Below, in pieces: positions 4,055-45,360 of a stretch of 64,000 bases of DNA (the first letter of the stretch is position 1; the number at the start of each line of letters is the position of its first letter). A model generated the notes under the pieces. It saw only the letters and a list, made by a program, of their open reading frames with translations, searched no databases and was not told where the DNA came from. The position numbers and the translations under genes were made by a program. The stretch lies in the sequence record NC_047713.1. One strand, given 5' to 3'.

Positions 4055-4128
4055 GGGTTAATAGCTCAGCTGGACAGAGCAACGCTCTTCTAAAGCGTCG
4101 GTCGTTGGTTCGAATCCAACTTAACCCG
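4055..4128 (+). tRNA. tRNA-Arg (UCU)
   Basis: Full cloverleaf: GGGTTAA/TTAACCC acceptor stem, ACGCT-CT-TCT-AA-AGCGT anticodon arm, TTCGAAT T-loop. Confidence 0.97.
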
Positions 4129-4129
4129 T

Positions 4130-4338
4130 TGGGGTCTAATTAACCCCATAGGATGTGACAGAATGAACCGTTTGGTTAATACCGGTCATTGTATAGTAGG
4201 GAAGGCTGTGGTGGCCGCCAGAAAGACTAGGAGACTAGAGTTCTGAGAACCCATACCAGGGTCCCGAAAGTTCAGAGGTATTACTATTCTTAGTATGACC
4301 CCTCTGTTGGAGGTAAAAAGATAATCCTCCCATCCACC
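4130..4338 (+). ncRNA. ~210-nt structured intergenic RNA between the two tRNAs (manA-like motif suspected)
   Basis: No ORF. Several stems: TGGGGT/ACCCCA, CTAG-gaga-CTAG, CAGAGG/CCTCTG, GGAGG/CCTCC. The family is recalled from memory, not searched. Confidence 0.5.
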
Positions 4339-4341
4339 CAA

Positions 4342-4413
4342 TCCACAATAGCTCAGCGGTAGAGTCGGCGACTGTTAATCGCCTTGTCCCTGGTTCGAAT
4401 CCAGGTTGTGGAG
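4342..4413 (+). tRNA. tRNA-Asn (GUU)
   Basis: TCCACAA/TTGTGGA acceptor stem, GGCGA-CT-GTT-AA-TCGCC anticodon arm, TTCGAAT T-loop. Confidence 0.97.
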
Positions 4414-15084: not shown

Positions 15085-16581
15085 ATGGATTTCAACGTAA
15101 CCGAAGCTGTCGAGCTAATCGTATTGTTAGCCGAGACAGAACAGCTAACACTACAAGATGCTCTACAGGAGTTCCTATCAGAGACCGAATTGGACTCTGA
15201 AACGGCATCCCATCTAAAGGGTGCCCTCTTTGAGAAATATTCACTCAGAGAGATGGCTACTGACGCCGTAACAAACGCTATGATGAAAGTGTTTGTTAGT
15301 CGTCCAGTAGTAGAAGAGGAAGTGGAGACTCCTGATGGTAATCTCTATTTTGTAGAGGTTGAACTAGAGGAGGAAGTTCTAGAAGGTTATCTAACCCTAG
15401 AAGAAATCCAGAATATGAGAGTGGATGCTGATGTTCTATCCGTTAAGTTAGTTGATGAAGGTGTTCGTGACACTGACGCCGAGAAAGGAACAGAGGAAAG
15501 AAAGAAACGCCTTGAGAAGAAGCGTGGAATGAAGTTGGACGACCATCCTCAGTATCTGGAAACAGATATGAAGAAGCGTCAGGAGAATAACGAGAAGGCT
15601 CGTAAGGATATGGATAAAGTGAAGGGTCAGAAGAACCCCCACTTCGAAGAGTATGATATTTCTGAAGGTCGCAAAGAAGGTGAGTCTTCTAAAGATTACG
15701 CCGATAGAATGACTAAGAAGTATTCTGGTGGTAAGTCTAAGTCCTATGATCCCATGAAGGATAAGAACTTCGACCATGACAAGGCAGAAAGAACCCGTGG
15801 TTCTATGGAAGAAGGTCTAGATGCCGTAGGTGGCGAAGACGCTGACATTAATAACGATAATAAGGTTGATAAGACTGATAAGTATCTACACAATCGTCGT
15901 AAGGCTATCGGAAAGGCGATGAAGAAGGAATCAGCTTGGGCTGAGTATCTAAATCGTAGAGGAATCTCTGAGGAAGTATTCTCTGAAGGTGACCTAATTG
16001 ATGCAGGTCGTAAGAATGAGGGAGAAAGAAGGGGAAAAAAGATTACCGGGGAGGGTGTTGATAACTCCTCCTCTGTGAAGTTGATGCCTCGTATCGCTGA
16101 AGCTGCTATTATCACTGAGAAGTCAGAGAGTAAGTCACAACAGCGTCTCTTTGGTATGGTAAGAGCAGCTCAGAAGGGTGAGAAACCCGCCTCTGGTAAG
16201 GTTGCTGAACTAGCTTCTAAGGTTGGTAAGAAAGACGTTCTAGACTTCGCTAAGACAAAACACAAGGGTTTGAAAGAGAACTGTTGTGATAAGTGTGGCA
16301 CTCCTGATTGTACTTGTGATGAGAAGCCCAAGGCTAAGAAAAAGAAAGCTAAACTAGATGAAGCAGGGATGCCTATTCTAGAGTATTCTAGAAACAACGC
16401 TGAAGGTCCTACACCTGAAATGATTGATCCTCCAAAGGATGAAGAAGGTAAGAAGGGTGTAAAGAACCCTAAAGGTAAGGCTAAGAGACCTGGTGCAGGT
16501 GACAGAAGACCTAACGACGGTGGTTCCGAACTACCATTCGATATGGGAACCGTACCTGGTGGCGGCGGTTGTGGTTGCTAA
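15085..16581 (+). CDS. Charged late protein, probable virion/internal head protein
   Basis: Late promoter; very D/E/K-rich; recurrent xxE-G/A/S motifs. Confidence 0.55.
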   Translation: MDFNVTEAVELIVLLAETEQLTLQDALQEFLSETELDSETASHLKGALFEKYSLREMATDAVTNAMMKVFVSRPVVEEEVETPDGNLYFVEVELEEEVLEGYLTLEEIQNMRVDADVLSVKLVDEGVRDTDAEKGTEERKKRLEKKRGMKLDDHPQYLETDMKKRQENNEKARKDMDKVKGQKNPHFEEYDISEGRKEGESSKDYADRMTKKYSGGKSKSYDPMKDKNFDHDKAERTRGSMEEGLDAVGGEDADINNDNKVDKTDKYLHNRRKAIGKAMKKESAWAEYLNRRGISEEVFSEGDLIDAGRKNEGERRGKKITGEGVDNSSSVKLMPRIAEAAIITEKSESKSQQRLFGMVRAAQKGEKPASGKVAELASKVGKKDVLDFAKTKHKGLKENCCDKCGTPDCTCDEKPKAKKKKAKLDEAGMPILEYSRNNAEGPTPEMIDPPKDEEGKKGVKNPKGKAKRPGAGDRRPNDGGSELPFDMGTVPGGGGCGC

Positions 16582-16607
16582 ATAGTGATGTAGTTTTTAG
16601 GTATTAC

Positions 16608-16784
16608 ATGTCAAAAGTAGTGAGTCTACTCAAGCCAGCACTTCTCTGGTTACGTGATTCTACCGAAGTGAAGAAGTTAGTAATTGAACTCCTCCAGCGT
16701 TACGCTGAGAGTACGAAGACTGATGTTGATGATTTACTCGTCGCCACAGTCAGTAAAGCACTCCTCCCCGAAGGAGTTGAGTGA
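16608..16784 (+). CDS. Small conserved cyanophage hypothetical protein
   Basis: ATG 16608 in frame with the track ORF; CTAAATA upstream. Confidence 0.65.
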   Translation: MSKVVSLLKPALLWLRDSTEVKKLVIELLQRYAESTKTDVDDLLVATVSKALLPEGVE

Positions 16785-16957
16785 TGGAGTGTTTGTTAGT
16801 ATCCCATACTACGTTTTGGGTACTAACAGGCGCGTTACTTCTTTCTGAAGCTATCGGTGAAACCAAATGGATTAAATCCAATGGAATTTTGTCATTCATC
16901 TTTGAACTTTTAGAGCAACTAGCTCGTATAGTCCGAAAGGCACTATATCAACGTTAA
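16784..16957 (+). CDS. Small membrane protein (57 aa), holin-like candidate
   Basis: Hand-translated MECLLVSHTTFWVLTGALLLSEAIGETKWIKSNGILSFIF...; start overlaps the upstream stop. Confidence 0.5.
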   Translation: MECLLVSHTTFWVLTGALLLSEAIGETKWIKSNGILSFIFELLEQLARIVRKALYQR

Positions 16958-16990
16958 CCTAGGGGGTATTCAAAACCTTCTAGGTTTTTT
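16956..16990 (+). terminator. Rho-independent terminator
   Basis: AACCTAGGGGG...CCTTCTAGGTT plus T-run. Confidence 0.7.
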
Positions 16991-17036
16991 CTATATAAAT
17001 AAAACTACCGGATATTCACACTAAAGGAATCAACAA

Positions 17037-17843
17037 ATGGCACTCTGGGGAAACAAAGACAATTTATCAGGTCCAACTCCAGTTACTATTGTCGGCACAG
17101 CAACCTCCGAGTTTTGGACTGCTGCCGCAACTGGAATTGGCACTATCGCAACAGGAACAACCATCGTATTAGGTGATGGTGGTTCAGCAGGTTTTGCAGT
17201 CATCGAAGCAAGTTTGGGGGCAGACCTAGTAAAGGTTAACCACCTATCAGCACTTGCTGGATCTAACTCGGCTGTATATTCACTACAACCTATTTCACTT
17301 AAGAACGATCCTGGATACGCACCTACTTCAGCCGATGGCTCACTAGGACGTACTCAGAGACCAGTTGGTTTGAGTTCTGCAAACATGACAGCATCAGCTG
17401 GAACTGTGTGGGAAGCTGATCACAGTGGTTGGGTTGGAGTTACAACCTACATGGACAACTCAGCAACACCTCCAGTGATGCGTGTTAAGAAGGAAGTTCT
17501 AGTCGCTATGTCTGGTATTCAGACTGGTGGACGTGAGTATCCTGGTATGTTCAGTAACGCAGCTGCCGCAGTTGTTATTGGTGCAGCATCCGTAAGTGGT
17601 TCTGCCACACCTGTAGCACTCACACCATCAGCATATACAGTATCTACTGCTTCAGCAACCGCTGGTGACCTAACCTATGTTTGGTCTACTAACGATGGTT
17701 CTGCTACAATTACTGGTGGCACTACAACTACCGCTAACATTGGATTCAGTACAGCTGGTAGCTACAACGTTACTTGTACAGTTTCTTCTGGAACTGCCTC
17801 TGATTCACCATCAGCAGATACACTTGCAGTAGTCGCTAGCTGA
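17037..17843 (+). CDS. Virion structural protein with C-terminal PKD/Ig-like domain
   Basis: MALWGNKD start; late promoter TATAAATA 16994-17001; C-terminal LTYVWS...GSYNVTCTVS. Confidence 0.65.
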   Translation: MALWGNKDNLSGPTPVTIVGTATSEFWTAAATGIGTIATGTTIVLGDGGSAGFAVIEASLGADLVKVNHLSALAGSNSAVYSLQPISLKNDPGYAPTSADGSLGRTQRPVGLSSANMTASAGTVWEADHSGWVGVTTYMDNSATPPVMRVKKEVLVAMSGIQTGGREYPGMFSNAAAAVVIGAASVSGSATPVALTPSAYTVSTASATAGDLTYVWSTNDGSATITGGTTTTANIGFSTAGSYNVTCTVSSGTASDSPSADTLAVVAS

Positions 17844-31262: not shown

Positions 31263-31496
31263 ATGAAAACCACATCCTTCCTAAGGTATCTTGGAAATAC
31301 CTTACTAGTGTTGGGTCATTTCACACTCCTTTGGGGAGATACACAGACCGCCTTGACTATCAAAATCATAGGTGGTCTTTCTTTGTTACCCTTTGCCATC
31401 TCCTGGAAGTTGTGGGATGTTGTGGCACTTGAGTTAATATTTGGAGGTATGGATGTAACCAAGTTCATCCAACTCTTGTTTCTCTCTTCAAGATAA
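31263..31496 (+). CDS. Small membrane protein
   Basis: Hydrophobic ORF. Confidence 0.65.
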   Translation: MKTTSFLRYLGNTLLVLGHFTLLWGDTQTALTIKIIGGLSLLPFAISWKLWDVVALELIFGGMDVTKFIQLLFLSSR

Positions 31497-31521
31497 AAAG
31501 AGAGTGGTGCGCCGGCTCCTT

Positions 31522-31548
31522 ACCACCTCCTCATGGGGGTGGTTTTTT
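31522..31548 (+). terminator. Rho-independent terminator
   Basis: ACCACCTCC-tcat-GGGGGTGGT plus T-run. Confidence 0.75.
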
Positions 31549-31581: not shown

Positions 31582-31878
31582 ATGAAAGCCGACGCACAAC
31601 TAGAACACCACGCCAATTGTTGGAATGCTATTCGAAACAATGATAAGGAATACTTTAAGATAGGAGTTGGTGTTTATAAAACCATCAACGCTGACAGGGA
31701 ATACTATATCAATAGTCGTATTGAAACTGATAAGAAGAGTGATATATCAGAAATGGATCAAGTGAAAGAAGCCCACTCTAAACACTTAAGTTACTTCATT
31801 GGATACAAATCAGAAGTAACAGTTGAAGCTATCAGTAGTGATTGGAAATCTACATTATACCGGGTTACTACCTGCTAG
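31582..31878 (+). CDS. Hypothetical protein
   Basis: Track ORF trimmed to ATG. Confidence 0.6.
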
Positions 31879-31910: not shown

Positions 31911-32909
31911 ATGAAAGCTTTAATCTCTGGAATTACAGGTCAAGATGGATCCTATCTTGCTGAACTTCTACTTAAGAAGGGGTATGAAGTCCATGGTATT
32001 ATTCGTAGAACCTCCTCGTTTAATACAGGAAGAATTGATCATATCTTTGACCGAATACACCTCCACTACGGGGATTTGACTGACTCCCTGAACATAGTCT
32101 CTATCATTAAGGAAGTAGAACCTGATGAGATCTACAACCTAGGGGCACAGAGTCATGTGAAGGTATCATTCGAGATCCCTGAATACACTGCACAAACAGA
32201 CGCTCTGGGAACTCTACGAGTATTGGAAGCAGTCCGTCTCCTAGGTATGGAGAATAGAGTTCGTATCTATCAGGCTTCCACTAGTGAGTTGTATGGATTA
32301 GTTCAGGCAGTTCCACAGAAAGAAGATACCCCATTCTATCCACGATCCCCATATGGTGTAGCGAAACTCTATGGTTACTGGATTATAAAGAACTACAGAG
32401 AGAGTTATGGGATGCACGCTAGTAGTGGTATCCTATTCAATCATGAGTCGCCACGACGGGGTGAGACCTTTGTAACTCGTAAGATTACTAGGGCACTCTC
32501 TCGTATCAGTACAGGACTACAAGATGTTCTCTACCTAGGTAACCTAAACGCCAAGAGGGACTGGGGACACGCAGAGGACTTTGTAGAGGCTATGTGGTTG
32601 ATGCTCCAACAGGATAAACCTGATGACTATGTGATTGCCACCGGGGAACAATACTCAGTTCGTGAATTTGTAGAGGCATCTGCTGAATACTTTGGTATGA
32701 AGATTGAGTGGCAGGGTGAGGGATTAGATGAAGTGGGTATAGATAGATTCACTAAGAAAGTCGTTGTTCGTGTCAGCGATAAGTATTTCCGTCCAGCAGA
32801 AGTTGAGTCTCTCTGGGGAGATCCTACCAAGGCTAAAGAGGTATTAGGTTGGGAACCTAAGCATACCTTTAGTTCTTTGGTTGAAGATATGTGTATTTAC
32901 GGTCAGTGA
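31911..32909 (+). CDS. gmd: GDP-mannose 4,6-dehydratase
   Basis: [43 protein letters not shown]. Confidence 0.95.
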
Positions 32910-32911
32910 TT

Positions 32912-33838
32912 ATGAAAAAGGGTTCAACGGTAGCAGTATTTGGTTCGGGTGGATTGGCTGGAAGTGCCATCACCAGGGCACTCAGGTGTTCCTTTATGGC
33001 ACATAAGATTCTTACCCCTAGGAGTAAGGAACTAGACCTAAGAGAACAGGCAGATGTTCGTAGTTGGTTTAAGGAGAACAAAGTTGATTATGTATTCTTA
33101 GCCGCCGCCCTAGTTGGTGGTATTATGGCTAACAAGACTAGAAAGGCAGAGTTCTTACACGACAACCTAATGATGCAGTGTAATGTAATTGACTCTGCAT
33201 ACTATAGTGGAGTAAAGAAACTCCTATTCTTAGGTACCTCTTGTATCTATCCAGCAGGAAGACACCATCCACTAGTGGAACATGAACTACTCACAGGACT
33301 ATTAGAACCAACCAATGACGCATACGCAATCGCAAAGATCGCAGGGATCAAACAATGTGACTTCTACCGAGAACAATATGGATTTGATGCTATCTCTATC
33401 ATGCCTCCTAATCTATATGGTCCTGGAGATAATTTCAATGAGGGATCAGGACATGTCCTCGCCTCATTGATGAATAGGTTTCACCTAGCGAAGGAAGCAG
33501 GTGCATCTAGAGTTGAATGTTGGGGTGATGGATCACCTATGAGGGAGTTTCTATATGTGGATGACTTAGCAGATGCTTCCTTATACTTTATGAATAGTTA
33601 TAGTGAGTCTGGGCACATTAATACTGGGACTGGTAGGGATGTAACTATCAAACAACTAGCGGAGACTATTGCTGATGTAGTTGGATACAAAGGTGAGATA
33701 GGTTGGGATACAACTAAACCCAACGGAAACCCAAGGAAACTACTTGACAGCAGTAGGGCAAACCTGTTAGGATGGGAACCCAAGGTTAAATTTGAAGACG
33801 GAATCAAACTCACATACAACTGGTATCTAGCACAATGA
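32912..33838 (+). CDS. fcl: GDP-4-keto-6-deoxy-sugar epimerase/reductase (Fcl/WcaG or ColC type)
   Basis: GSGGLAG, LGTSCIYP, YAIAK, PPNLYGPGDNF, GHVL. Confidence 0.88.
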   Translation: MKKGSTVAVFGSGGLAGSAITRALRCSFMAHKILTPRSKELDLREQADVRSWFKENKVDYVFLAAALVGGIMANKTRKAEFLHDNLMMQCNVIDSAYYSGVKKLLFLGTSCIYPAGRHHPLVEHELLTGLLEPTNDAYAIAKIAGIKQCDFYREQYGFDAISIMPPNLYGPGDNFNEGSGHVLASLMNRFHLAKEAGASRVECWGDGSPMREFLYVDDLADASLYFMNSYSESGHINTGTGRDVTIKQLAETIADVVGYKGEIGWDTTKPNGNPRKLLDSSRANLLGWEPKVKFEDGIKLTYNWYLAQ

Positions 33839-35028
33839 CAAAGATTACAAATGGATATACGTGGCCTCTTATGAAGGACACTGTGACCAAGAGAGATAGG
33901 TTGAGGATGGCAAAGTTTATCCTCACCAGTGATAGACTAACACAAGGTAAAGAAGTTCGTAAGTTTGAGGAGCAGTGGAGTGAGTGGCTTGGAGTTAAAC
34001 ATTCTCTTTTTGTTAGCAGTGGCAGTACCGTTAACCTACTTCTTGTGTCTGCTTGGAAGGAATTATACGAGATCCCAGACCAGTCGAAAGTAATTGTACC
34101 TGCTTGTACTTGGGTAACTAATGTTGCTCCTATCATCCAGTGTGGTTTGACTCCAATCTTTTGTGACATCAACTTAGAAGACTACTCCTTTGATCTGGAT
34201 AAACTACAGGATATTCGTGATGAATATCAAGATGACATTAGAGGTATCTTTGTTACTCACCTCCTAGGATTTCCTGCTAATGTGGAAAAGTTTCGTGATG
34301 TTTTCCCCGACGCTCATATTCTAGAAGATGTATGTGAGAGTCACGGAGCAGTCCTCCCTAGTGGTGATAAGGCGGGAACCTTTGATGTTGGTGGCACATT
34401 TAGTTTCTACTTTGGGCACCACATGACTACCATTGAAGGTGGTATGGTGAGTACTAATGATCCAGAACTCTATGATCTAATGAGAATGAAGCGTTCTCAT
34501 GGGTTAGCGAGAGAATCACTATACTTTGAAACATACAAAGAGAAGTATCCTGATGTAAATCCACAGTTTCTCTTCGTTACTGAGGGATATAACTTCCGTA
34601 ATACTGATCTAGCTGCTGTATTAGGACAGTCTCAACTGAAGAGACTAGACAGTATGATTGGGATTCGTAACAGGAACTATGAGTTATACCAACAATTACT
34701 AAAGAAACACGAACATGACCTTACACATGAGTATGGTGGTTCTTTCTATATCCCCTCCACACAGGGGGATGTAAGTAGTTTCTGTTTTCCATTTGTAGTT
34801 GATAATATGCACTGTTATCTTAAGTTAAAAGAACTTCTAGAAGAATACTATGTTGAGTATCGACCTATTGTGAGTGGTAACCTCCTACGACAACCATTCT
34901 TGAGAGAATATTCTGCTGAGTGTCCCAAGGCAGATATAGCCCATGAAAAGGGACTATATATTGGGAATAATCACTTTGTAGATGAGTCTAACTTTCACAT
35001 GTTAGATGAGATTTTGAGCCAACTTTGA
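33835..35028 (+). CDS. PLP-dependent DegT-family enzyme, ColD-type GDP-4-keto-6-deoxymannose 3-dehydratase
   Basis: VSSGSTVNLL, EDVCESHG, GTFSFYFGHHMTTIEGG (His where aminotransferases have the PLP Lys); no E1-type Fe-S Cys cluster. Confidence 0.75.
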   Translation: MTKITNGYTWPLMKDTVTKRDRLRMAKFILTSDRLTQGKEVRKFEEQWSEWLGVKHSLFVSSGSTVNLLLVSAWKELYEIPDQSKVIVPACTWVTNVAPIIQCGLTPIFCDINLEDYSFDLDKLQDIRDEYQDDIRGIFVTHLLGFPANVEKFRDVFPDAHILEDVCESHGAVLPSGDKAGTFDVGGTFSFYFGHHMTTIEGGMVSTNDPELYDLMRMKRSHGLARESLYFETYKEKYPDVNPQFLFVTEGYNFRNTDLAAVLGQSQLKRLDSMIGIRNRNYELYQQLLKKHEHDLTHEYGGSFYIPSTQGDVSSFCFPFVVDNMHCYLKLKELLEEYYVEYRPIVSGNLLRQPFLREYSAECPKADIAHEKGLYIGNNHFVDESNFHMLDEILSQL

Positions 35029-35029
35029 T

Positions 35030-35824
35030 ATGACATTTTCATTTAATCATATGGGCAACTTGGGGCATCTGGGAAACCAGATGTTTCAGTATGCCGCACT
35101 CATTGGTATGGGGGCTAAGCATGGGAGGAGTATTTGTATCCCCCATAAACAAAGTTTTGGGCAATCATACTACCAAGAACTTCGTAGTAATATCTACGAT
35201 GCCTTCAACCTCTCACCTAATGGTGTAGGTATCAGTAGGTTCCCCACAGTTCAGGAAGGTAGTTTCCACTTTGATGAGAACTTATTTGAGAACCCACCAG
35301 ATGAGAACTGTAACCTCTATGGATTCTTCCAGAGTGAAAAGTGGTTCTCACATATCAAAGAAGGTATTAAGAAAGAGTTCACTCTAAAGGATGAATACCG
35401 GGAAGTGGCACAACTGATGAGAGAACAACTCTCTGGTCAGGTTGTTGCTATTCATGTTCGTAGAACTGACTACCTATCCAATCCAAACCACGGAGCATTG
35501 GGTTTAGATTACTATGAGAAGGCACTGGAGTTGGTTCCTAATAACCTTACAGTAGTTGTATTCACTGATGATCCAGAGTGGGCTAAAGAACAACCACTCT
35601 TTCCAGATGATAGGTTCTTTGTATCAGAGACAGACTGTCCCTATACAGACCTTGCTCTTATGAGTATGTGTGATTATCATATTATTGCCAACAGTTCATA
35701 CTCTTGGTGGGGTGCATACTTATCTGATAGTAAGAAAGTAATTGCTCCTAAACAGTGGTTTGGGGAACCACTTAAAACAAATAACCTGAAAGATCTTTAT
35801 TGTGATGGGTGGGTGAAACTATGA
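35030..35824 (+). CDS. GT11 alpha-1,2-fucosyltransferase-like glycosyltransferase
   Basis: GHLGNQMFQYA, FFQSEKWF, AIHVRRTDY, IIANSSYSWWGAYL. Confidence 0.9.
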   Translation: MTFSFNHMGNLGHLGNQMFQYAALIGMGAKHGRSICIPHKQSFGQSYYQELRSNIYDAFNLSPNGVGISRFPTVQEGSFHFDENLFENPPDENCNLYGFFQSEKWFSHIKEGIKKEFTLKDEYREVAQLMREQLSGQVVAIHVRRTDYLSNPNHGALGLDYYEKALELVPNNLTVVVFTDDPEWAKEQPLFPDDRFFVSETDCPYTDLALMSMCDYHIIANSSYSWWGAYLSDSKKVIAPKQWFGEPLKTNNLKDLYCDGWVKL

Positions 35825-36444
35825 GTAACTTTGCAAGTGCTAAACAGTTTATCAAGAATGGTATTGATACACAACAGGAGTCTATCTCTGGTGGTGGCAG
35901 CACTATGGCTTCCACAGTTGCCTTCAGATACTTCCTACCAAAGTATATCAAACAGTATGGTATTGAGAGTATCTTAGACATTGGGTGTGGTGACTGGCAT
36001 TGGATGTCTACTATCAGAGAAGAGTTTCCTGATGTAGACTATGAGGGATGGGATGCCTCTGAGGATATGATTAATCCCATGACTGAGAAGTATGGAACAG
36101 AGAATACCAGGTTTGAGGTAAAGGATATCATTGATAACAAGTATCCCAAAGTGGATTTGGTTATCGCTCGTGATGTTCTATTCCACCTCAAAGAGGATTA
36201 CCTACAGAAGGTTCTCAAGAATATCAGTAAGGCGGGTGTGAAGTATCTACTAGCAACTACCTTTCCAGGTTTACCTAAGAACGAAGAACTCACTCCTAAG
36301 AAATATGACGGTTGGGGATTCAGACCAATCAATCTGGATATCGAGCCTTATAATATGAAAGATTATTGTATTAATGATTTCAAGGAAACCACAGCTCCCA
36401 ACAGAGGGTATCATCGTCATGTGTATTTGTATGAGGTAAAATGA
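35821..36444 (+). CDS. Class I SAM-dependent methyltransferase
   Basis: ILDIGCGDW, YEGWD, DLVIARDVLFHL. Confidence 0.85.
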   Translation: MSNFASAKQFIKNGIDTQQESISGGGSTMASTVAFRYFLPKYIKQYGIESILDIGCGDWHWMSTIREEFPDVDYEGWDASEDMINPMTEKYGTENTRFEVKDIIDNKYPKVDLVIARDVLFHLKEDYLQKVLKNISKAGVKYLLATTFPGLPKNEELTPKKYDGWGFRPINLDIEPYNMKDYCINDFKETTAPNRGYHRHVYLYEVK

Positions 36445-36593
36445 AGATCGAAATTGAACTCTCTAAAGATGTAGAATACAAAGGAGAGAAACTAGGTGAG
36501 TATATCTGGAACCTAGAAGAGGGAATTAATCATGTTACTGGTTTTGGTGATTCACTTGAGGAATGTTTTAAGGAAATTGTGAGGTTTAGATGA
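36441..36593 (+). CDS. Small hypothetical protein (50 aa)
   Basis: Hand-translated; ATGA overlaps on both sides. Confidence 0.55.
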   Translation: MKIEIELSKDVEYKGEKLGEYIWNLEEGINHVTGFGDSLEECFKEIVRFR

Positions 36594-37321
36594 AGAAAGT
36601 AGCTATTATCTTTATTGGAACTGGTAGATACCTAGAGTTTCTACCAAAGTATTATGAACAGGCAGAAGCAAACCTCTTCCCCGACAGACCCAAACACTAC
36701 TATGTGTTTACTGATGGTGACTTAGGTAATGAACTACCTGATAATGTAACTGTATACGAACAGGAACACCTTCAATGGCCATACATCACCCTCTATCGTT
36801 TCGGTATTATCCAGAAACACCTAGAGGAGATTGAGAAGGAGTGTGGTTTCCTACTCTTTATGGATGCTGATACACAGGTAGTATCCCCTGTATCGTTTGA
36901 TGAAGTATTCAGGAAGGGAAAACCCTATACAGGTGTTCATCACCCCTGCCACGCCCTGAATATGCCACCACACAATGAGTTTCCTGGTAGTCTAGAAACT
37001 AATACAGCATCCAAGGCAGCATGTAAACCTGGTGATGACTTCTCTGTATATTGGCAAGGTTGTGTATGGGGTGGAAACATAAAGGGTGCTCGTAAGATTA
37101 TTGATACTCTCCACCACAGAACTAAACAAGATGAGGAGAATGGAATCATTGCCAAGTGGCATGATGAAAGTCATATCAATAGATACTTCCTTGATAACAA
37201 AGATAAGGTGAATACCCTATCACCTAGTTTCGCATACCCAGAGTCCTTCACTGAGTATATGGAAGACTACGAACCTAAGATTGTACACCTAGCAAAAGAG
37301 AATTCTAAGTATCAGGTATGA
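36590..37321 (+). CDS. GT6 (ABO-like alpha-1,3-Gal/GalNAc transferase) family glycosyltransferase
   Basis: FIGTGRY, YYVFTD, WPYITLYRF, FMDAD (DXD), YWQGCVWGG, WHDESHINRYF. Confidence 0.88.
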   Translation: MKKVAIIFIGTGRYLEFLPKYYEQAEANLFPDRPKHYYVFTDGDLGNELPDNVTVYEQEHLQWPYITLYRFGIIQKHLEEIEKECGFLLFMDADTQVVSPVSFDEVFRKGKPYTGVHHPCHALNMPPHNEFPGSLETNTASKAACKPGDDFSVYWQGCVWGGNIKGARKIIDTLHHRTKQDEENGIIAKWHDESHINRYFLDNKDKVNTLSPSFAYPESFTEYMEDYEPKIVHLAKENSKYQV

Positions 37322-37941
37322 GTTACTTCACAGATTATGACAACGAATTCACAGTATTTGAGGCACCAAAGAACGGGGGAACTACTCTCCGTCTTTGGAT
37401 ATACTACGCAGGAACAGGGGAGTTGGTGAAGTCAGCGGAGTCTGAATACTACGCTGGAACTGGTGAAACATACAAACAACTCCAAGAGTGGGGTTATGTG
37501 AATGGGGAATATGAGAACCCTAAGACTCAGATGGTATGTATCAAGAGGGACCCTGTAGATAGGTTTGTAAGTGCCTTCTATGATAAGGTAATCAAAGAGG
37601 GGAGAATCAAAGTAACCATCGATGAGTTTCTCTCAAACTATGAAGAGATACTTGATAAGTCTACCCTCAAGATGAATGATGGTAAGACTAACTTCATGAA
37701 GTTTCACTTTGAGTCACAGACATATCACTTTGGTAAAGATAGAGATCTATATCATAAGGTCTTTGATATCTCAGAGGTCGGTACTGGTTTGAAGAAGTAT
37801 CTGGAGGGTAAGTGGAATATAGAACTACCTGATGTCCATGCTAGAAATAGTGGTGGTGGTCGGAAGTTTGATCTCTCCAGGGGACAACTGAATAAGGTGA
37901 AGGAAATCTACACACAGGACTATTATAATGGCTGGTACTGA
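37318..37941 (+). CDS. Sulfotransferase family 2 protein
   Basis: PKNGGTT 5'-PSB-like and RDPVDRFVSAF 3'-PB motifs. Confidence 0.75.
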   Translation: MSYFTDYDNEFTVFEAPKNGGTTLRLWIYYAGTGELVKSAESEYYAGTGETYKQLQEWGYVNGEYENPKTQMVCIKRDPVDRFVSAFYDKVIKEGRIKVTIDEFLSNYEEILDKSTLKMNDGKTNFMKFHFESQTYHFGKDRDLYHKVFDISEVGTGLKKYLEGKWNIELPDVHARNSGGGRKFDLSRGQLNKVKEIYTQDYYNGWY

Positions 37942-38713
37942 AGGATATATCCTGATAGGTATTGGTGATAGGTATCTACAGATGACAGAGAACCTCACTA
38001 AAACTCTAAAGAAACATGGAGATAATAGAGGATCCCTAACTATCACAAGATCGGATAATAGGGAACTCTATAGTGAGTGCAACACTGAGTTTGAGAGGAA
38101 TGGAACTCTACCTAAGATTACCTTAGATAGATACTTACCTTTTGATCACAATATATTCCTAGATGCTGATATGTTATGTGTAGGTGATACACAACATGTA
38201 TGGGATCTATTCAGGAGTAGTGATCAGTTTGTTCAACAGGTAGGATGTTTGGGAAGAGATCCTAACTTCCACGCTCACCAGTATGAGAGTGAGTTGGGTT
38301 TTGAGATTCCTAGAGTCCATGGTGGTTGTATCTACATCAATAGAGAGAAACTAGACCCAGAGTTCTTTCCCTATATGAGAGAGTGTTTCCTAAACTATAA
38401 ACAAATATTTCATAATAGTGGTCTAACCTATAAGAATAGTAGACCAGACCAACCACTATACGCTCTAGCAAATGGTATGTGGGGATTCAAACCTGTGGAT
38501 CTATACACTAACCCTATCATGACTATTGTGAATGATAGCACCCCACCCCCACTAGATAGTGTGTTCTTCAATAAGAAGAGGGGTCCTAAGTTAGATACTC
38601 CTGTTCCTTTTGTTCATGTATTCCGTGGAGAAGAGGGTATGTCTAAGGGTTATACTAGAGGTGACCAGAAGATGTTGTTGTCCCATTATGATTACTACCT
38701 GAACTATGAATAA
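37928..38713 (+). CDS. GT-A glycosyltransferase (GT8-like)
   Basis: IFLDADML, HGGCIYI, DQP. Confidence 0.65.
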   Translation: MAGTEGYILIGIGDRYLQMTENLTKTLKKHGDNRGSLTITRSDNRELYSECNTEFERNGTLPKITLDRYLPFDHNIFLDADMLCVGDTQHVWDLFRSSDQFVQQVGCLGRDPNFHAHQYESELGFEIPRVHGGCIYINREKLDPEFFPYMRECFLNYKQIFHNSGLTYKNSRPDQPLYALANGMWGFKPVDLYTNPIMTIVNDSTPPPLDSVFFNKKRGPKLDTPVPFVHVFRGEEGMSKGYTRGDQKMLLSHYDYYLNYE

Positions 38714-39494
38714 AACTATATGGATGTGTTGGTTCCAGGGTTGGGATAAGGCACCAGAGATTACAGAGAAGTGTTTAGAGTCCTGGAAACACTACAATAG
38801 TGATTGGGATATTGTTCTACTAGATGAATCCAACTACAAGGATTACATCTCCATTGATAAAGAACTACCAGGACTGAAGACAAACTATATCTCACTGGGT
38901 GATATCCTCCGTCTCTTTCTACTAAAAGAGCATGGTGGAGTATGGGCAGATGCAACTATCTTCTGTAACAAACCAGTGGATTGGGTTTTGGATTATGAGG
39001 ATTCTTTCATCTTCACCAGGAAGGATAAGATGATTGCCTCTTGGTTTGTTGCTGCTCAGAAAGATTCCCATGTTGTAGATGTATGGTATAATAAGATGTT
39101 AGAGTTCTGGAAGTATCGTATGGAAAATACAGATACTTTCGAGCAACAATATGGTTGGATACACGCTTTGTTCCGTCAGTCCTACGCTCAGGATAAGGGG
39201 TTCAGGGATATTGTAGATAGTATGGATAAGATTGATTGCATGAGTGATGGTCAATCTAGAGGTAAGGGTCCGCACTTCTTTGCACCCTACAGTAAATACT
39301 TCTACAACCCTATCAGTGACACGATAAAGAATCGTATAGACTCTAAAGTTGATCCACTATATAAGTTGTCTTACAAGGCAAACACAGACTGGAGAAGTCC
39401 AGAGAACAGGGGTATCCACCCAGCAGACCAAAAGATTATGTTGGAATATCCAACTAACAGTGAACTACATTATCTACTCAACACATTAAAATGA
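38706..39494 (+). CDS. Capsular polysaccharide synthesis / GT32-like glycosyltransferase
   Basis: KTIWMCWFQG..P..CLESWK, DILRLFLLKEHGGVWADAT. Confidence 0.85.
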   Translation: MNKTIWMCWFQGWDKAPEITEKCLESWKHYNSDWDIVLLDESNYKDYISIDKELPGLKTNYISLGDILRLFLLKEHGGVWADATIFCNKPVDWVLDYEDSFIFTRKDKMIASWFVAAQKDSHVVDVWYNKMLEFWKYRMENTDTFEQQYGWIHALFRQSYAQDKGFRDIVDSMDKIDCMSDGQSRGKGPHFFAPYSKYFYNPISDTIKNRIDSKVDPLYKLSYKANTDWRSPENRGIHPADQKIMLEYPTNSELHYLLNTLK

Positions 39495-40396
39495 CAAATA
39501 AATCATTGGTTACCGGTGGCGCGGGTTTCATCGGGTCACATATTGTGGACCGACTTATTACACTAGGACATCAAGTCGTAGTGATTGACAATGAATCCTC
39601 TGATGGTCATGATGAATACCATTGGAACAGAAGCGGACAAGTACAAAACCATAAGGCAGACATTCGTGACTACGATGCAATCAAACACTTGTTTGGTGGA
39701 GTCAATAATGTTTTTCACCTTGCCGCTAAAGCATCAGTACAGGCGTCAGTAGATAACCCCCTACCAACTATTGCCACACAGGTAATGGGAACCGCCAATG
39801 TATTGGAGGCAGCACGACAATCTGGTGTGAGTAAGTTTGTATATTCCTCTACGAGTGCCTGTTACGGCAACAACAACCCCATTCCTAATGTAGAAACGAT
39901 GAGAGAAGACCCTCTCAACGCCTACGCTATTGGTAAGTTATCTGGGGAACAACTAGTTCGTGCCTATCACTACCTCTATGGTATGAAGACGGTGGCATTC
40001 CGTTATACCAATGTATATGGGGAGAGGGCAAGACATGTAGGACACTATGCTCCTGCTGTTAGTAAGTTCCTAAAGATGAGAGCACAGGGAGAACCCCTAA
40101 CTATCTTTGGTGATGGTGCCCAACGCCGGGACTTTATTCATGTATCTGATGTAGTCAACGCTAACTGCTGTATTACCTATGAGGAACTAGAGCAGTGGGG
40201 TGAGACCTATAACATTGGTTATGGTAAGAACTGGAGTATCCAAGAGATCGCAGACTCTATCAGTCAGGAACAGATTCACCTATCTGCTCGTACTGGTGAG
40301 ATGCGTGAGACGCTTGCTGATATTGGGAAGGCAAAGGCAGAGTTGATGTGGAAACCAAAGACTGACATCATGGATTGGATTAGGGTACAACTCTGA
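39491..40396 (+). CDS. NAD-dependent nucleotide-sugar epimerase/dehydratase
   Basis: VTGGAGFIGSH, HLAA, YSSTSACYG, YAIGK, RRDFIHV. Confidence 0.9.
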   Translation: MTNKSLVTGGAGFIGSHIVDRLITLGHQVVVIDNESSDGHDEYHWNRSGQVQNHKADIRDYDAIKHLFGGVNNVFHLAAKASVQASVDNPLPTIATQVMGTANVLEAARQSGVSKFVYSSTSACYGNNNPIPNVETMREDPLNAYAIGKLSGEQLVRAYHYLYGMKTVAFRYTNVYGERARHVGHYAPAVSKFLKMRAQGEPLTIFGDGAQRRDFIHVSDVVNANCCITYEELEQWGETYNIGYGKNWSIQEIADSISQEQIHLSARTGEMRETLADIGKAKAELMWKPKTDIMDWIRVQL

Positions 40397-41013
40397 TGCC
40401 AGTATTTCAGAAGGACAACAAGAAAGTTCTATTCATCCATGTTCCCAAGACTGCAGGAAGTTCTGTGAATAAACTCTTTGTGAATAATGGATATGAAATG
40501 TCCTACTATTCTGAGAGTTCTAAAGATCTATACAATGGATTATGTGGACCACAACATCTGGACTCACTTCTATTGGAAGATGAGTTCCAAGATTTCTCTC
40601 AGTTTGATTATATCTTCTCTATCTTCAGAGACCCAGTAGACAGACATCTATCTGAGTTCACCTGGGCACCCTGGGGACTAATGGGTAGAAACATCTACAC
40701 ACCAGAAAGATTTGATGAGTGGTGTCCTAAGATATTCAGAGCGTATCAGGACTCACCATATAGGATGGATAATCACATTAGACCTCAACATGAGTTCTAT
40801 GTCAATGGATGTGATGTGTATGACTATGAAAATATCAATACACTCACAGAGAAACTATGTGATAAAATAGGTCTAGATAATAAAGAGATGCCATATGAAA
40901 GGTCTTCACGATATGATAGTGAGGATTATGTCATCTATGAAGATACTTACAATTGTATTACTGAATTTTACAAAGGAGACTATCAATGGCAAAAGGATTC
41001 AGTCCTGTTGTGA
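40396..41013 (+). CDS. Sulfotransferase family 2 protein
   Basis: FIHVPKTAGSS and FRDPVDRHLSEF. Confidence 0.82.
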   Translation: MPVFQKDNKKVLFIHVPKTAGSSVNKLFVNNGYEMSYYSESSKDLYNGLCGPQHLDSLLLEDEFQDFSQFDYIFSIFRDPVDRHLSEFTWAPWGLMGRNIYTPERFDEWCPKIFRAYQDSPYRMDNHIRPQHEFYVNGCDVYDYENINTLTEKLCDKIGLDNKEMPYERSSRYDSEDYVIYEDTYNCITEFYKGDYQWQKDSVLL

Positions 41014-41864
41014 CTAAGGATAAGAACAAGTCCCAGTTCAAACTACAGGGTGTTCCTAGGATTTACTACATCAGTTTAGATGATCATGCTCATCGTCAAG
41101 ACTATATGGAGTCCCAGTTTGAAGACTGGGGCATCACTAACTTCGAAAGAATCTCTGCTCATGATGGTAGAGGTGATAATGATCTGAGTGATATTCTCAA
41201 AGGATCTTATCCAAAGATGATGAGTTCTGGTGAGGTTGGTTGTGTAACCTCTCACCTAAAGGCACTAAAACACTGGTTAGATACTACAGAGGGTGAAGAG
41301 TTTCTCCTTATGATGGAGGATGATTGTGATATCTCCACTGCTTCCCACTGGGGGTTCTCCTGGAGAGAGTTTGTTGGGAATATTCCATCCCATGTAGATT
41401 GTGTTCAGTTGGCAGTTATCAACCCGGCAGAACTACATATCAAACTCCATATCAGGTTTGTGAATGATTTCTCCACTGCCTCATACCTAATCCGTAGATC
41501 ACACGCAGAGAAGTTAGTTAGACTCTATTGTAGGGGTGATAAGTATAAACTTGATAGTGATATCAAACCCAGAGCAGTTGCTGATGATCTTATCTACAAC
41601 TCTGGTGTGACTCTTGCTATGCCTCTATTTGCCTTCAAGATTGCACTAGGTTCCAGTATCCATGATGTCCATATCAATACCTTCCACAAGAGTAGTCATG
41701 ATGGTATCTGGGAGTTTTGGAAGAAAACAGCACCAACTATTGAGAACTGGAAACCATTCTTCAACTATGATGCCTATCTGGGAACCCTACCACCCAATGT
41801 TGTGGTTCAACAATGGCAGCAAAAACAGGAATCCAAAGCAAAAGATTCAGGGGCTTCGCAATAG
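40986..41864 (+). CDS. GT25 glycosyltransferase
   Basis: IYYISLD..RQDYM, FERISAHDG, GEVGCVTSHLKAL, MMEDD. Confidence 0.85.
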   Translation: MAKGFSPVVTKDKNKSQFKLQGVPRIYYISLDDHAHRQDYMESQFEDWGITNFERISAHDGRGDNDLSDILKGSYPKMMSSGEVGCVTSHLKALKHWLDTTEGEEFLLMMEDDCDISTASHWGFSWREFVGNIPSHVDCVQLAVINPAELHIKLHIRFVNDFSTASYLIRRSHAEKLVRLYCRGDKYKLDSDIKPRAVADDLIYNSGVTLAMPLFAFKIALGSSIHDVHINTFHKSSHDGIWEFWKKTAPTIENWKPFFNYDAYLGTLPPNVVVQQWQQKQESKAKDSGASQ

Positions 41865-42682: not shown

Positions 42683-42688
42683 TATTAG

Positions 42689-42716
42689 AAGGAGGGTTTG
42701 ATACCCTCCTTTTTTT
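42689..42716 (+). terminator. Rho-independent terminator
   Basis: AAGGAGGG-tttgata-CCCTCCTT plus T-run. Confidence 0.8.
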
Positions 42717-45227: not shown

Positions 45228-45254
45228 AGAAATGTAACGTTCTTATTACAACAC

Positions 45255-45360
45255 TTCCATCTAACCGAGACCTATGGGGAAGTAAAATACGTCTCTAATA
45301 CCTACACCGGAGGGTGGTGTAGGAATAATACTATCGTCAGCTCCCCCTGGCACTACTTAC
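45255..45360 (+). ncRNA. Structured psbA 5' leader (PhotoRC-II-type motif)
   Basis: GAGAC/GTCTC stem and CCTACACC/GGTGTAGG hairpin upstream of psbA; family assigned from memory. Confidence 0.6.

Follow-up and report, generated by a model that had tools for sequence, protein, structure and literature searches.

A run of four closely packed genes at positions 31911–35824 of a 64,000-nucleotide stretch of sequence record NC_047713.1 (the window, whose numbering is used throughout unless another record is named) probably constitutes a GDP-L-colitose-type module. The genes encode Gmd, an Fcl-type short-chain dehydrogenase/reductase (SDR), a DegT-family enzyme resembling the dehydratase ColD, and a GT11 glycosyltransferase. 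GDP-colitose is the best-supported product, with a probability of roughly 0.6, and GDP-fucose may be made alongside it. Among bacterial O-antigen sugars colitose is a rare one, and antibodies, lectins and the receptor-binding proteins of phages recognize it.

The four genes match Synechococcus phage ACG-2014f_Syn7803C8 (KJ019058 / NC_047713) at 100% over 31911–35824. The source record, of 223 kb, is that of a T4-like cyanophage of the Kyanoviridae, and window position 31911 corresponds to its position 155911. A first, sequence-only reading of the window had assumed a marine phage, which is correct, and every gene that it had placed in this run was recovered at its coordinates, on the + strand and with the domains claimed. 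The genes lie head to tail with spacings, in order, of +2, −4 and +1 nt, and the close packing continues 3' of the GT11 gene, chiefly as −4 overlaps. The same four genes were found in 45 ACG-2014f-type records at 95–100% nucleotide identity and in four S-CAM7 records at 60–80%. The ColD-like gene is unbroken in all 45 of the former (98–100% amino-acid identity) and in S-CAM7 (65%). Gmd passes its model at equivalog level (TIGR01472; Table 1).

The active site of the DegT-family enzyme carries much of the evidence. Its loop GTFSFYFGHHMTTIEGG (residues 187–203, window 34393–34443) contains His195, which aligns both with His188 of ColD and with the Schiff-base lysine of E. coli O157 PerA. The reference ColD, ColC and WbgN proteins were taken from E. 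coli O55:H7 CB9615, and the catalytic His188 of ColD (the first His of its 'HH') was placed by means of the PDB mutants H188N and H188K. His195 is invariant in alignments of 9 and of 33–34 relatives. Furthermore, no Cys occurs within residues 168–316 of the phage protein, and there is a gap in this protein, in E. coli ColD and in the bacterial sister clade where E1/RfbH-like proteins of related contigs carry the Cys-rich insert GRDCYCVG...SCGVCG. Both active-site features described in the sequence-only reading, namely the exchange of histidine for lysine and the lack of an E1-type Fe–S cysteine cluster, were thus borne out. Other positions that are invariant over the same 9 to 34 relatives, including E. 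coli ColD, are (phage/ColD) G63/G56, W93/W88, D165/D159, E168/E162, S190/S183, R226/R219, N253/N248 and R343/R331, as well as the His195/His188 pair (H195/H188) itself; S64/S57 is invariant in the nine-sequence set and conserved in 90% or more of the set of 34. These residues we take to be contacts to the cofactor and to the GDP diphosphate.

Structural comparisons lead to the same family. The enzyme has the type-I aminotransferase fold of the DegT family, which binds pyridoxal or pyridoxamine 5'-phosphate (PLP or PMP), as indicated by its match to PF01041 and by an AlphaFold model (pLDDT 90.6) built from a 33-sequence alignment from which E. coli ColD was left out. In a Foldseek search of the PDB with this model, ranks 1–12 were all ColD chains (TM 0.83–0.87), followed by GDP-perosamine synthase and then by E1. 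A sequence search of solved structures also placed ColD first (E = 2.4e-50, 175 bits), ahead of a putative NDP-4-keto-6-deoxyglucose 3-dehydratase (122 bits), E1 (106 bits) and perosamine synthase (93 bits). Among NCBIfam models the best was RfbH (NF011936), at 180 bits against a cut-off of 423, which genuine E. coli ColD, at 263 bits, also fails to reach. No dedicated ColD or ColC NCBIfam model was matched, even by genuine E. coli ColD and ColC, and an E1 label is therefore the default outcome. The use of NCBIfam cut-offs to separate ColD from E1, or ColC from Fcl, was dropped because the genuine E. coli enzymes miss them too.

Phylogeny, which had been proposed beforehand as a check, places the enzyme with the His-type 3-dehydratases and apart from Lys-type aminotransferases such as PerA. 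The tree, obtained by a quick IQ-TREE search under LG+C20, comprised 131 proteins: to the window protein and the references ColD and PerA of E. coli was added a non-redundant set of homologues and paralogues, drawn from 80 loci of viral and 80 of bacterial origin. The Lys-type enzymes are basal and the His-type enzymes form a clade with 99% support, of which RfbH-like proteins are the first branch. A group of 118 rows that includes the window protein has the long-branched E. coli ColD as its sister (95% SH-aLRT) and leaves the RfbH-like proteins outside, a placement obtained with one characterized ColD and a quick search. This group consists of a 'GHH' clade, which holds the window protein and numbers 53 non-redundant rows (46 taken from IMG/VR contigs), and an 'AHH' clade of 65 bacterial rows. 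The phage protein therefore appears to be a His-type, Fe–S-free dehydratase that is related to ColD without being a close ColD orthologue. Among bacterial species genomes, four close relatives were found at 50–54% identity, all of them in metagenome-assembled genomes, and most others were at 36–42%.

The genomic surroundings of these relatives point to the substrate. A scan of viral contigs returned at least 206 IMG/VR stretches with a ColD-like gene. Within the 'GHH' clade, gmd lies at most 4 kb away in 41 of the 46 loci whose sequence extends far enough upstream, an Fcl-type gene is close by in 29 of these 46, and 28 of 53 have a GT11 gene in the vicinity; the commonest order is gmd, fcl-type, ColD-like, GT11, as in the window, where the first two spacings are those given above. 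In E. coli O55, colC is followed by colD with a 4-nt ATGA overlap, which is the same order and overlap as that of the phage fcl-like and ColD-like genes. Because of the linkage to gmd and of this shared order and overlap, GDP-4-keto-6-deoxymannose is strongly supported as the predicted substrate. From homology, active-site features and gene linkage, we infer that the protein is a GDP-sugar 3-dehydratase.

In the pathway proposed here, in which three enzymes would convert GDP-mannose to the GDP-bound 3,6-dideoxy sugar, the DegT-family protein would act in the second step as a ColD-like, PMP-dependent 3-dehydratase on GDP-4-keto-6-deoxy-D-mannose, with His195 as the acid/base that expels the 3-OH. 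Since there is no Fe–S cluster, the cofactor is proposed to be regenerated in the manner of ColD, through transamination with glutamate, and without the reductase on which E1 relies; the mechanism of ColD and its contrast with E1 and SpnQ have been described (PMC8987622). The product, GDP-4-keto-3,6-dideoxy-D-mannose, would pass to the translationally coupled Fcl-type SDR, which in the role of ColC would epimerize C5 and reduce C4 to yield GDP-L-colitose. Fcl chemistry consists of C3/C5 epimerization and C4 reduction, and on a 3-deoxy substrate it would give colitose, so that the pathway is chemically reasonable. The GT11 enzyme would then transfer the L-sugar, most likely in α-1,2 linkage to a galactose-type acceptor, as its family suggests.

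The SDR assigned to the third step shares 49% identity with E. coli Fcl and 38% with ColC, the two references being 39% identical to each other, and the E. coli Fcl structure 1bsv matches it at E = 2e-91. On the Fcl equivalog model NF047922 (cut-off 500) it reaches 420 bits, which is below the cut-off, and ColC reaches 304. The Ser/Cys, Tyr-x3-Lys and His motifs of Fcl are retained in alignments with Fcl and ColC, and the position expected of ColC, directly upstream of the 3-dehydratase gene, is therefore occupied by an Fcl-family SDR with reductase and epimerase residues. It is not, however, an orthologue of ColC, to which it is less similar than to Fcl and from which it lies far apart in a tree of 81 Fcl-family proteins. 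In this tree the phage SDR belongs to a clade of 43 rows, which also takes in four genuine Fcl proteins of E. coli and those of the cyanophages P-SSM2 and S-SCSM1; ColD-linked and unlinked reductases are mixed, with five changes, and ColC is a long branch elsewhere. The ColD-less comparators came from isolate genomes, the viral-contig scan with the Fcl-type protein having given only close, ColD-linked relatives. Thr164 of Fcl (PTNLYG loop) was tried as a signature and rejected: Thr occurs in 9 of the 20 unlinked reductases but in 6 of the 61 ColD-linked ones, raw counts that look suggestive; with phylogeny allowed for, three independent supported pairs are left and p is ~1. The equivalent residue in ColD-linked reductases is mostly Ala, Pro or Cys, and is Pro166 in the phage SDR (window 33407–33409, in the loop IMPPNLYG) and Cys in ColC.

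Membership of the fourth protein in GT11 is clear from its PF01531 score (99 bits against a cut-off of 23.9) and from its HVRRTDY motif, which aligns with HIRRGDY of E. coli O55 WbgN; the two proteins are 32% identical over 265 residues. A structure search gave no meaningful solved-structure relative of the phage GT11. WbgN is a GT11 colitosyltransferase, in line with the statement of the sequence-only reading that a GT11 enzyme transfers colitose in E. coli O55, and both WbgN and human FUT2 accept GDP-Col and GDP-Fuc (PMC11987014).

Several points weigh against colitose as the product. The main caveat is that the reductase appears by phylogeny to be a genuine Fcl, shared with ColD-less cyanophages; GDP-fucose may for this reason be made too, the Fcl-type enzyme possibly forming it straight from the Gmd product. 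After phylogenetic control, no residue signature was found that parts ColD-linked from unlinked reductases. The GT11 gene is uninformative on the sugar transferred, since GT11 enzymes use both donors. The ColD-like enzyme shares no more than 32% identity with ColD of E. coli O55, the sole characterized ColD that was compared, and this ColD is a long branch outside the clade of the window protein. The contact roles given to the conserved residues are putative ones, and the result obtained is their conservation. Around the 'AHH' genes, gmd is adjacent in 1 of 66 rows and an Fcl-type gene nearby in 27 of 66 (the 66 being the 65 rows of the bacterial clade plus RfbH-like row(s) with the same motif), and with gmd so nearly absent the GDP specificity of the wider group is not secure. 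The claim that the pathway makes colitose rather than plain GDP-fucose was therefore upheld in part: the dehydratase tree, the best matches, the missing Fe–S cluster and the gene order speak for it, whereas the Fcl identity of the reductase, the low identity to ColD and the two donors accepted by GT11 enzymes weaken the contrast with plain GDP-fucose.

The most probable of the alternatives, although it is unlikely, is that the module serves in practice to make GDP-L-fucose, like those of P-SSM2 and S-SCSM1. The Fcl-type enzyme would then outcompete the DegT enzyme for what Gmd produces, GT11 would transfer fucose, and the product of the DegT enzyme would be minor or separate. In favour of this alternative, the reductase clusters with genuine Fcl proteins, among them those of ColD-less cyanophages, and has a higher identity to Fcl than to ColC; in addition, GT11 enzymes use GDP-Fuc well, and a GT6 gene is present downstream (Table 1), the GT6 enzymes characterized to date requiring a 2'-fucosylated acceptor (PMC3516806). 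However, the DegT gene stands, with translational coupling, between fcl and the GT11 gene, is unbroken in 45 genomes and holds the same position in at least 206 viral contig stretches. Such persistence would be surprising for a gene that contributes nothing to the flux, and the DegT and Fcl-type enzymes share one substrate pool.

Somewhat less probable still is that the 3-dehydratase does act on a GDP-sugar but that the final sugar is another 3,6-dideoxyhexose stereoisomer or a derivative carrying a methyl group or some other modification, formed via the second SDR of the island (39491–40396) or via a methyltransferase. Viral contigs such as L028, L037 and L042 pair gmd and a ColD-like gene with an SDR that is ~27% identical to Fcl, and the clade therefore feeds more than one reductase type; moreover, a methyltransferase gene follows directly after the GT11 gene in the window. 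The coupled partner in the window is, however, a full Fcl-type enzyme with the epimerase Cys/His and the reductase Ser-Tyr-Lys, which predicts the L-xylo (colitose) configuration, and the second SDR is GalE-like, GalE being a UDP-hexose 4-epimerase.

That the DegT protein is an aminotransferase making a GDP-4-amino-4,6-dideoxy sugar of the perosamine type is improbable. Its label in RefSeq and PHROGs and the second place of GDP-perosamine synthase among the fold families would fit, and SpnQ can transaminate without its reductase (PMC8987622); against this, the Schiff-base Lys has given way to His in all members of the clade, the tree puts the protein among dehydratases and apart from PerA, ColD requires H188K (plus S187N) to turn into an aminotransferase according to PDB titles, and no N-acyltransferase gene lies in the island. 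Least probable of all is that the enzyme is a 3-dehydratase of the E1/SpnQ type, with a CDP- or dTDP-4-keto-6-deoxyhexose as its substrate and reduction via the nearby phage ferredoxin (42028–42321): the names given to relatives in JGI, UniRef and the S-CAM7 GenBank record, the rank of RfbH among NCBIfam models and the ferredoxin gene in the same run would suit it, but the RfbH score is far below the cut-off, which genuine ColD misses as well, the Fe–S Cys insert is missing, no CDP- or dTDP-glucose pathway gene lies in the island and gmd is adjacent across the clade.

Compared with the gmd-fcl-GT11 fucose module common in cyanophages, the ColD-like gene looks inserted, re-routing that module to the 3-deoxy analogue. 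Because WbgN and FUT2 take both donors, no new transferase would be required after the gain of the ColD-like gene. A wider scenario, tentative and given slightly less than even odds, is that a mostly viral ColD-like clade has been inserted into the cyanophage gmd-fcl-GT11(-GT6) island, where the gain of a single gene turns a glycan of the fucose type, histo-blood-group-like and possibly sulfated, into one of the colitose type with an ordinary Fcl and a donor-promiscuous GT11. A GT11 and GT6 pair builds histo-blood-group-like Fuc-α-1,2-Gal(α-1,3-X) epitopes.

A number of side observations concern the diversity of the ColD-like genes. In the contig L003, from a near-identical phage, gmd, fcl and the GT11 gene are 99–100% identical to the window at the nucleotide level, and the 3' half of the ColD-like gene falls to 67–85% (L003:10001-11173 versus window 33835–35028; 82% amino-acid identity overall), a recombinant patch limited to this gene. 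The uncultured 642-kb phage LR756502.1 carries at 436611–438707 an Fcl-type gene (47% identity) directly followed by a ColD-like gene (33%), which may be an independent case of this pairing. A variant module, consisting of gmd, a ColD-like gene and a gene for a 355-aa SDR (~27% identical to Fcl), occurs in the viral contigs L028, L037, L042, L043, L045, L048, L050, L052 and L054–L056, which are without an Fcl-type gene; several of these contigs also have a separate 435-aa RfbH/E1-like gene bearing the Fe–S Cys insert (e.g. L042:18821-20128). The variant module may make a different 3,6-dideoxyhexose. Proteins of the 'AHH' sister clade are 36–42% identical to the phage enzyme (loci L087–L166, e.g. 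L145 from Prochlorococcus and L151 from Pelagibacteraceae), and some of these loci have an SDR that is ~30% identical to Gmd in place of gmd.

The module stands at the head of a 14-gene island of soluble enzymes, in which nearly all genes overlap (Table 1); after the GT25 gene, hli, ferredoxin and a further hli gene continue in the same run. No transmembrane-grade hydrophobic segment was found in the island enzymes, and no flippase, polymerase or initiating transferase gene in the island, so that the enzymes presumably act on a pre-existing acceptor. The island would presumably decorate an existing glycan of the host cell or of the virion during infection. Two sulfotransferase-like genes, together with an adenylylsulfate kinase gene that is carried by the S-CAM7 island (L202:12639-13208), suggest that the glycan is sulfated.

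Table 1. Features of the sugar island and of its boundaries, in window positions
Feature	Position	Strand	Evidence or remark
Candidate wcaG RNA motif, cis-regulatory	31443..31518	+	RF01761 32.4 bits, below gathering score 42
Terminator-like hairpin, upstream island boundary, directly 3' of wcaG-like RNA	31522..31543	+	9-bp stem, 6 GC pairs, then TTTTTATT
Small ORF, 98 aa, RefSeq gp219, hypothetical	31582..31878	+	No Pfam match
gmd	31911..32909	+	TIGR01472 557 bits (cut-off 415); PF16363 506 bits
Fcl-type epimerase/4-reductase (SDR)	32912..33838	+	PF01370; NF047922 420 bits (cut-off 500)
ColD-like DegT-family enzyme	33835..35028	+	PF01041 198 bits; ColD 2gms E 2.4e-50
His195 codon, in place of Schiff-base lysine	34417..34419	+	Alignment with ColD His188 and PerA Lys
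GT11 glycosyltransferase, α-1,2-fucosyl/colitosyl-transferase type	35030..35824	+	PF01531 99 bits; HxRRxD motif
SAM-dependent methyltransferase	35821..36444	+	PF08242, PF13649
50-aa ORF gp225	36441..36593	+	Missing from near-identical contig L003
GT6 glycosyltransferase, histo-blood-group A/B synthase family	36590..37321	+	PF03414 76 bits; NF041524 174 bits
Sulfotransferase-like protein 1	37318..37941	+	PF03567 29 bits
Conserved phage protein	37928..38713	+	No Pfam/NCBIfam match; PHROG 1903, function unknown
Caps_synth/GT32-type glycosyltransferase	38706..39494	+	PF05704 141 bits; also PF04488
GalE-like NDP-sugar epimerase (SDR)	39491..40396	+	PF01370 211 bits; TIGR01179 176 bits, below cut-off 262
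Sulfotransferase-like protein 2	40396..41013	+	PF03567 34 bits; RefSeq 'Galactose-3-O-sulfotransferase'
GT25 glycosyltransferase, LPS-type	40986..41864	+	PF01755 44 bits
Strong terminator-like hairpin closing the co-oriented overlapping run	42687..42713	+	11-bp stem, then T-run

The wcaG-like RNA lies ~390 nt upstream of gmd and was matched over the whole model (1–98) at E = 5.7e-4 in a 1.1-kb search. Since full-scoring wcaG RNAs (56–95 bits) precede gmd at the corresponding place in six related loci (L004, L005, L007, L008, L012 and S-CAM7, L202), the match in the window is taken as a real but divergent candidate copy. A mechanical open reading frame (31263–31496) that is not annotated in RefSeq overlaps the motif. 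A scan for promoter-like sites gave no excess over shuffled controls. Two further RNA motifs were noted elsewhere in the window, both on the + strand: manA (RF01745, 90 bits, 4055–4413) between two tRNA genes and PhotoRC-II (RF01717, 69.5 bits, 45241–45336) just upstream of psbA.

The ColD-like gene is labelled 'aminotransferase' in RefSeq and in PHROG 3139, as had been anticipated for automated annotation, and 'hypothetical protein' in GenBank; its relatives are named 'CDP-4-keto-6-deoxy-D-glucose-3-dehydrase' in UniRef, in JGI and in the GenBank record of S-CAM7. The genuine pathway fares similarly. In E. coli O55:H7 CB9615 (L086:8702-10788, 16228-17100), PGAP gives ColD as 'DegT/DnrJ/EryC1/StrS family aminotransferase', ColC as 'GDP-L-fucose synthase family protein' and WbgN as 'alpha-1,2-fucosyltransferase'. 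Because of this systematic annotation gap, surveys of viral auxiliary metabolic genes would miss a colitose pathway. A search of one literature library found no paper joining colitose with cyanophage or a 3-dehydratase term with a cyanophage term, and published descriptions of cyanophages mention only (GDP-)fucose (PMC9602691).

Should the wider insertion scenario hold, viruses would for the first time have been credited with a 3,6-dideoxyhexose pathway, which would moreover be widespread in aquatic viromes. A lytic cyanophage making colitose would re-decorate the surface of a major ocean primary producer or its own virion, which would bear on superinfection exclusion, grazing and adsorption specificity. 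The case would also illustrate how one inserted gene re-routes a nucleotide-sugar module that retains its existing reductase and transferase.

Among known systems, the closest counterpart of the phage enzyme is ColD itself (E. coli O55 WbdK, PDB 2GMS/3B8X; called ColA in the nomenclature of an E. coli O-antigen review). Both have the type-I aminotransferase fold with His for Lys and without an Fe–S motif; both depend on gmd, are encoded downstream of and overlapping a reductase gene, and keep the putative cofactor and diphosphate contact residues. They differ in sequence, the phage enzyme having Gly194 where ColD has Ser187 and belonging to a separate, mostly viral clade. E1 (CDP-6-deoxy-L-threo-D-glycero-4-hexulose 3-dehydrase; RfbH/AscC/DdhC) and SpnQ are likewise His-type, PMP-dependent 3-dehydratases of the same superfamily; however, they bear a [2Fe–2S] Cys motif and require a reductase partner (PMC8987622), whereas the phage protein is without the insert and stands beside gmd and fcl instead of CDP- or dTDP-glucose genes. 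ColC (E. coli O55 WbdJ, GDP-L-colitose synthase) is, like the phage SDR, an extended SDR of the Fcl family encoded directly upstream of the dehydratase, although the phage SDR is by phylogeny an Fcl. WbgN shares the HxRRxD motif and the GT11 family with the phage transferase, which is no nearer to it than is usual between GT11 enzymes. The cyanophage 'LPS/cell-wall' islands of P-SSM2, S-SCSM1, S-SRM01 and S-SKS1 resemble that of the window in their gene neighbourhood, their Gmd (76–77% identical), their Fcl (51–56%) and their additional epimerases; the GT11 enzymes of P-SSM2 and S-SCSM1 are 42–44% identical to that of the window, the GT6 of P-SSM2 is 30% identical, and S-SCSM1 has an annotated wcaG RNA upstream. 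These four phages are without the ColD-like gene, which among isolates is found only in the ACG-2014f lineage and in S-CAM7. Read in this way, the module would be a viral, divergent form of the known colitose pathway.

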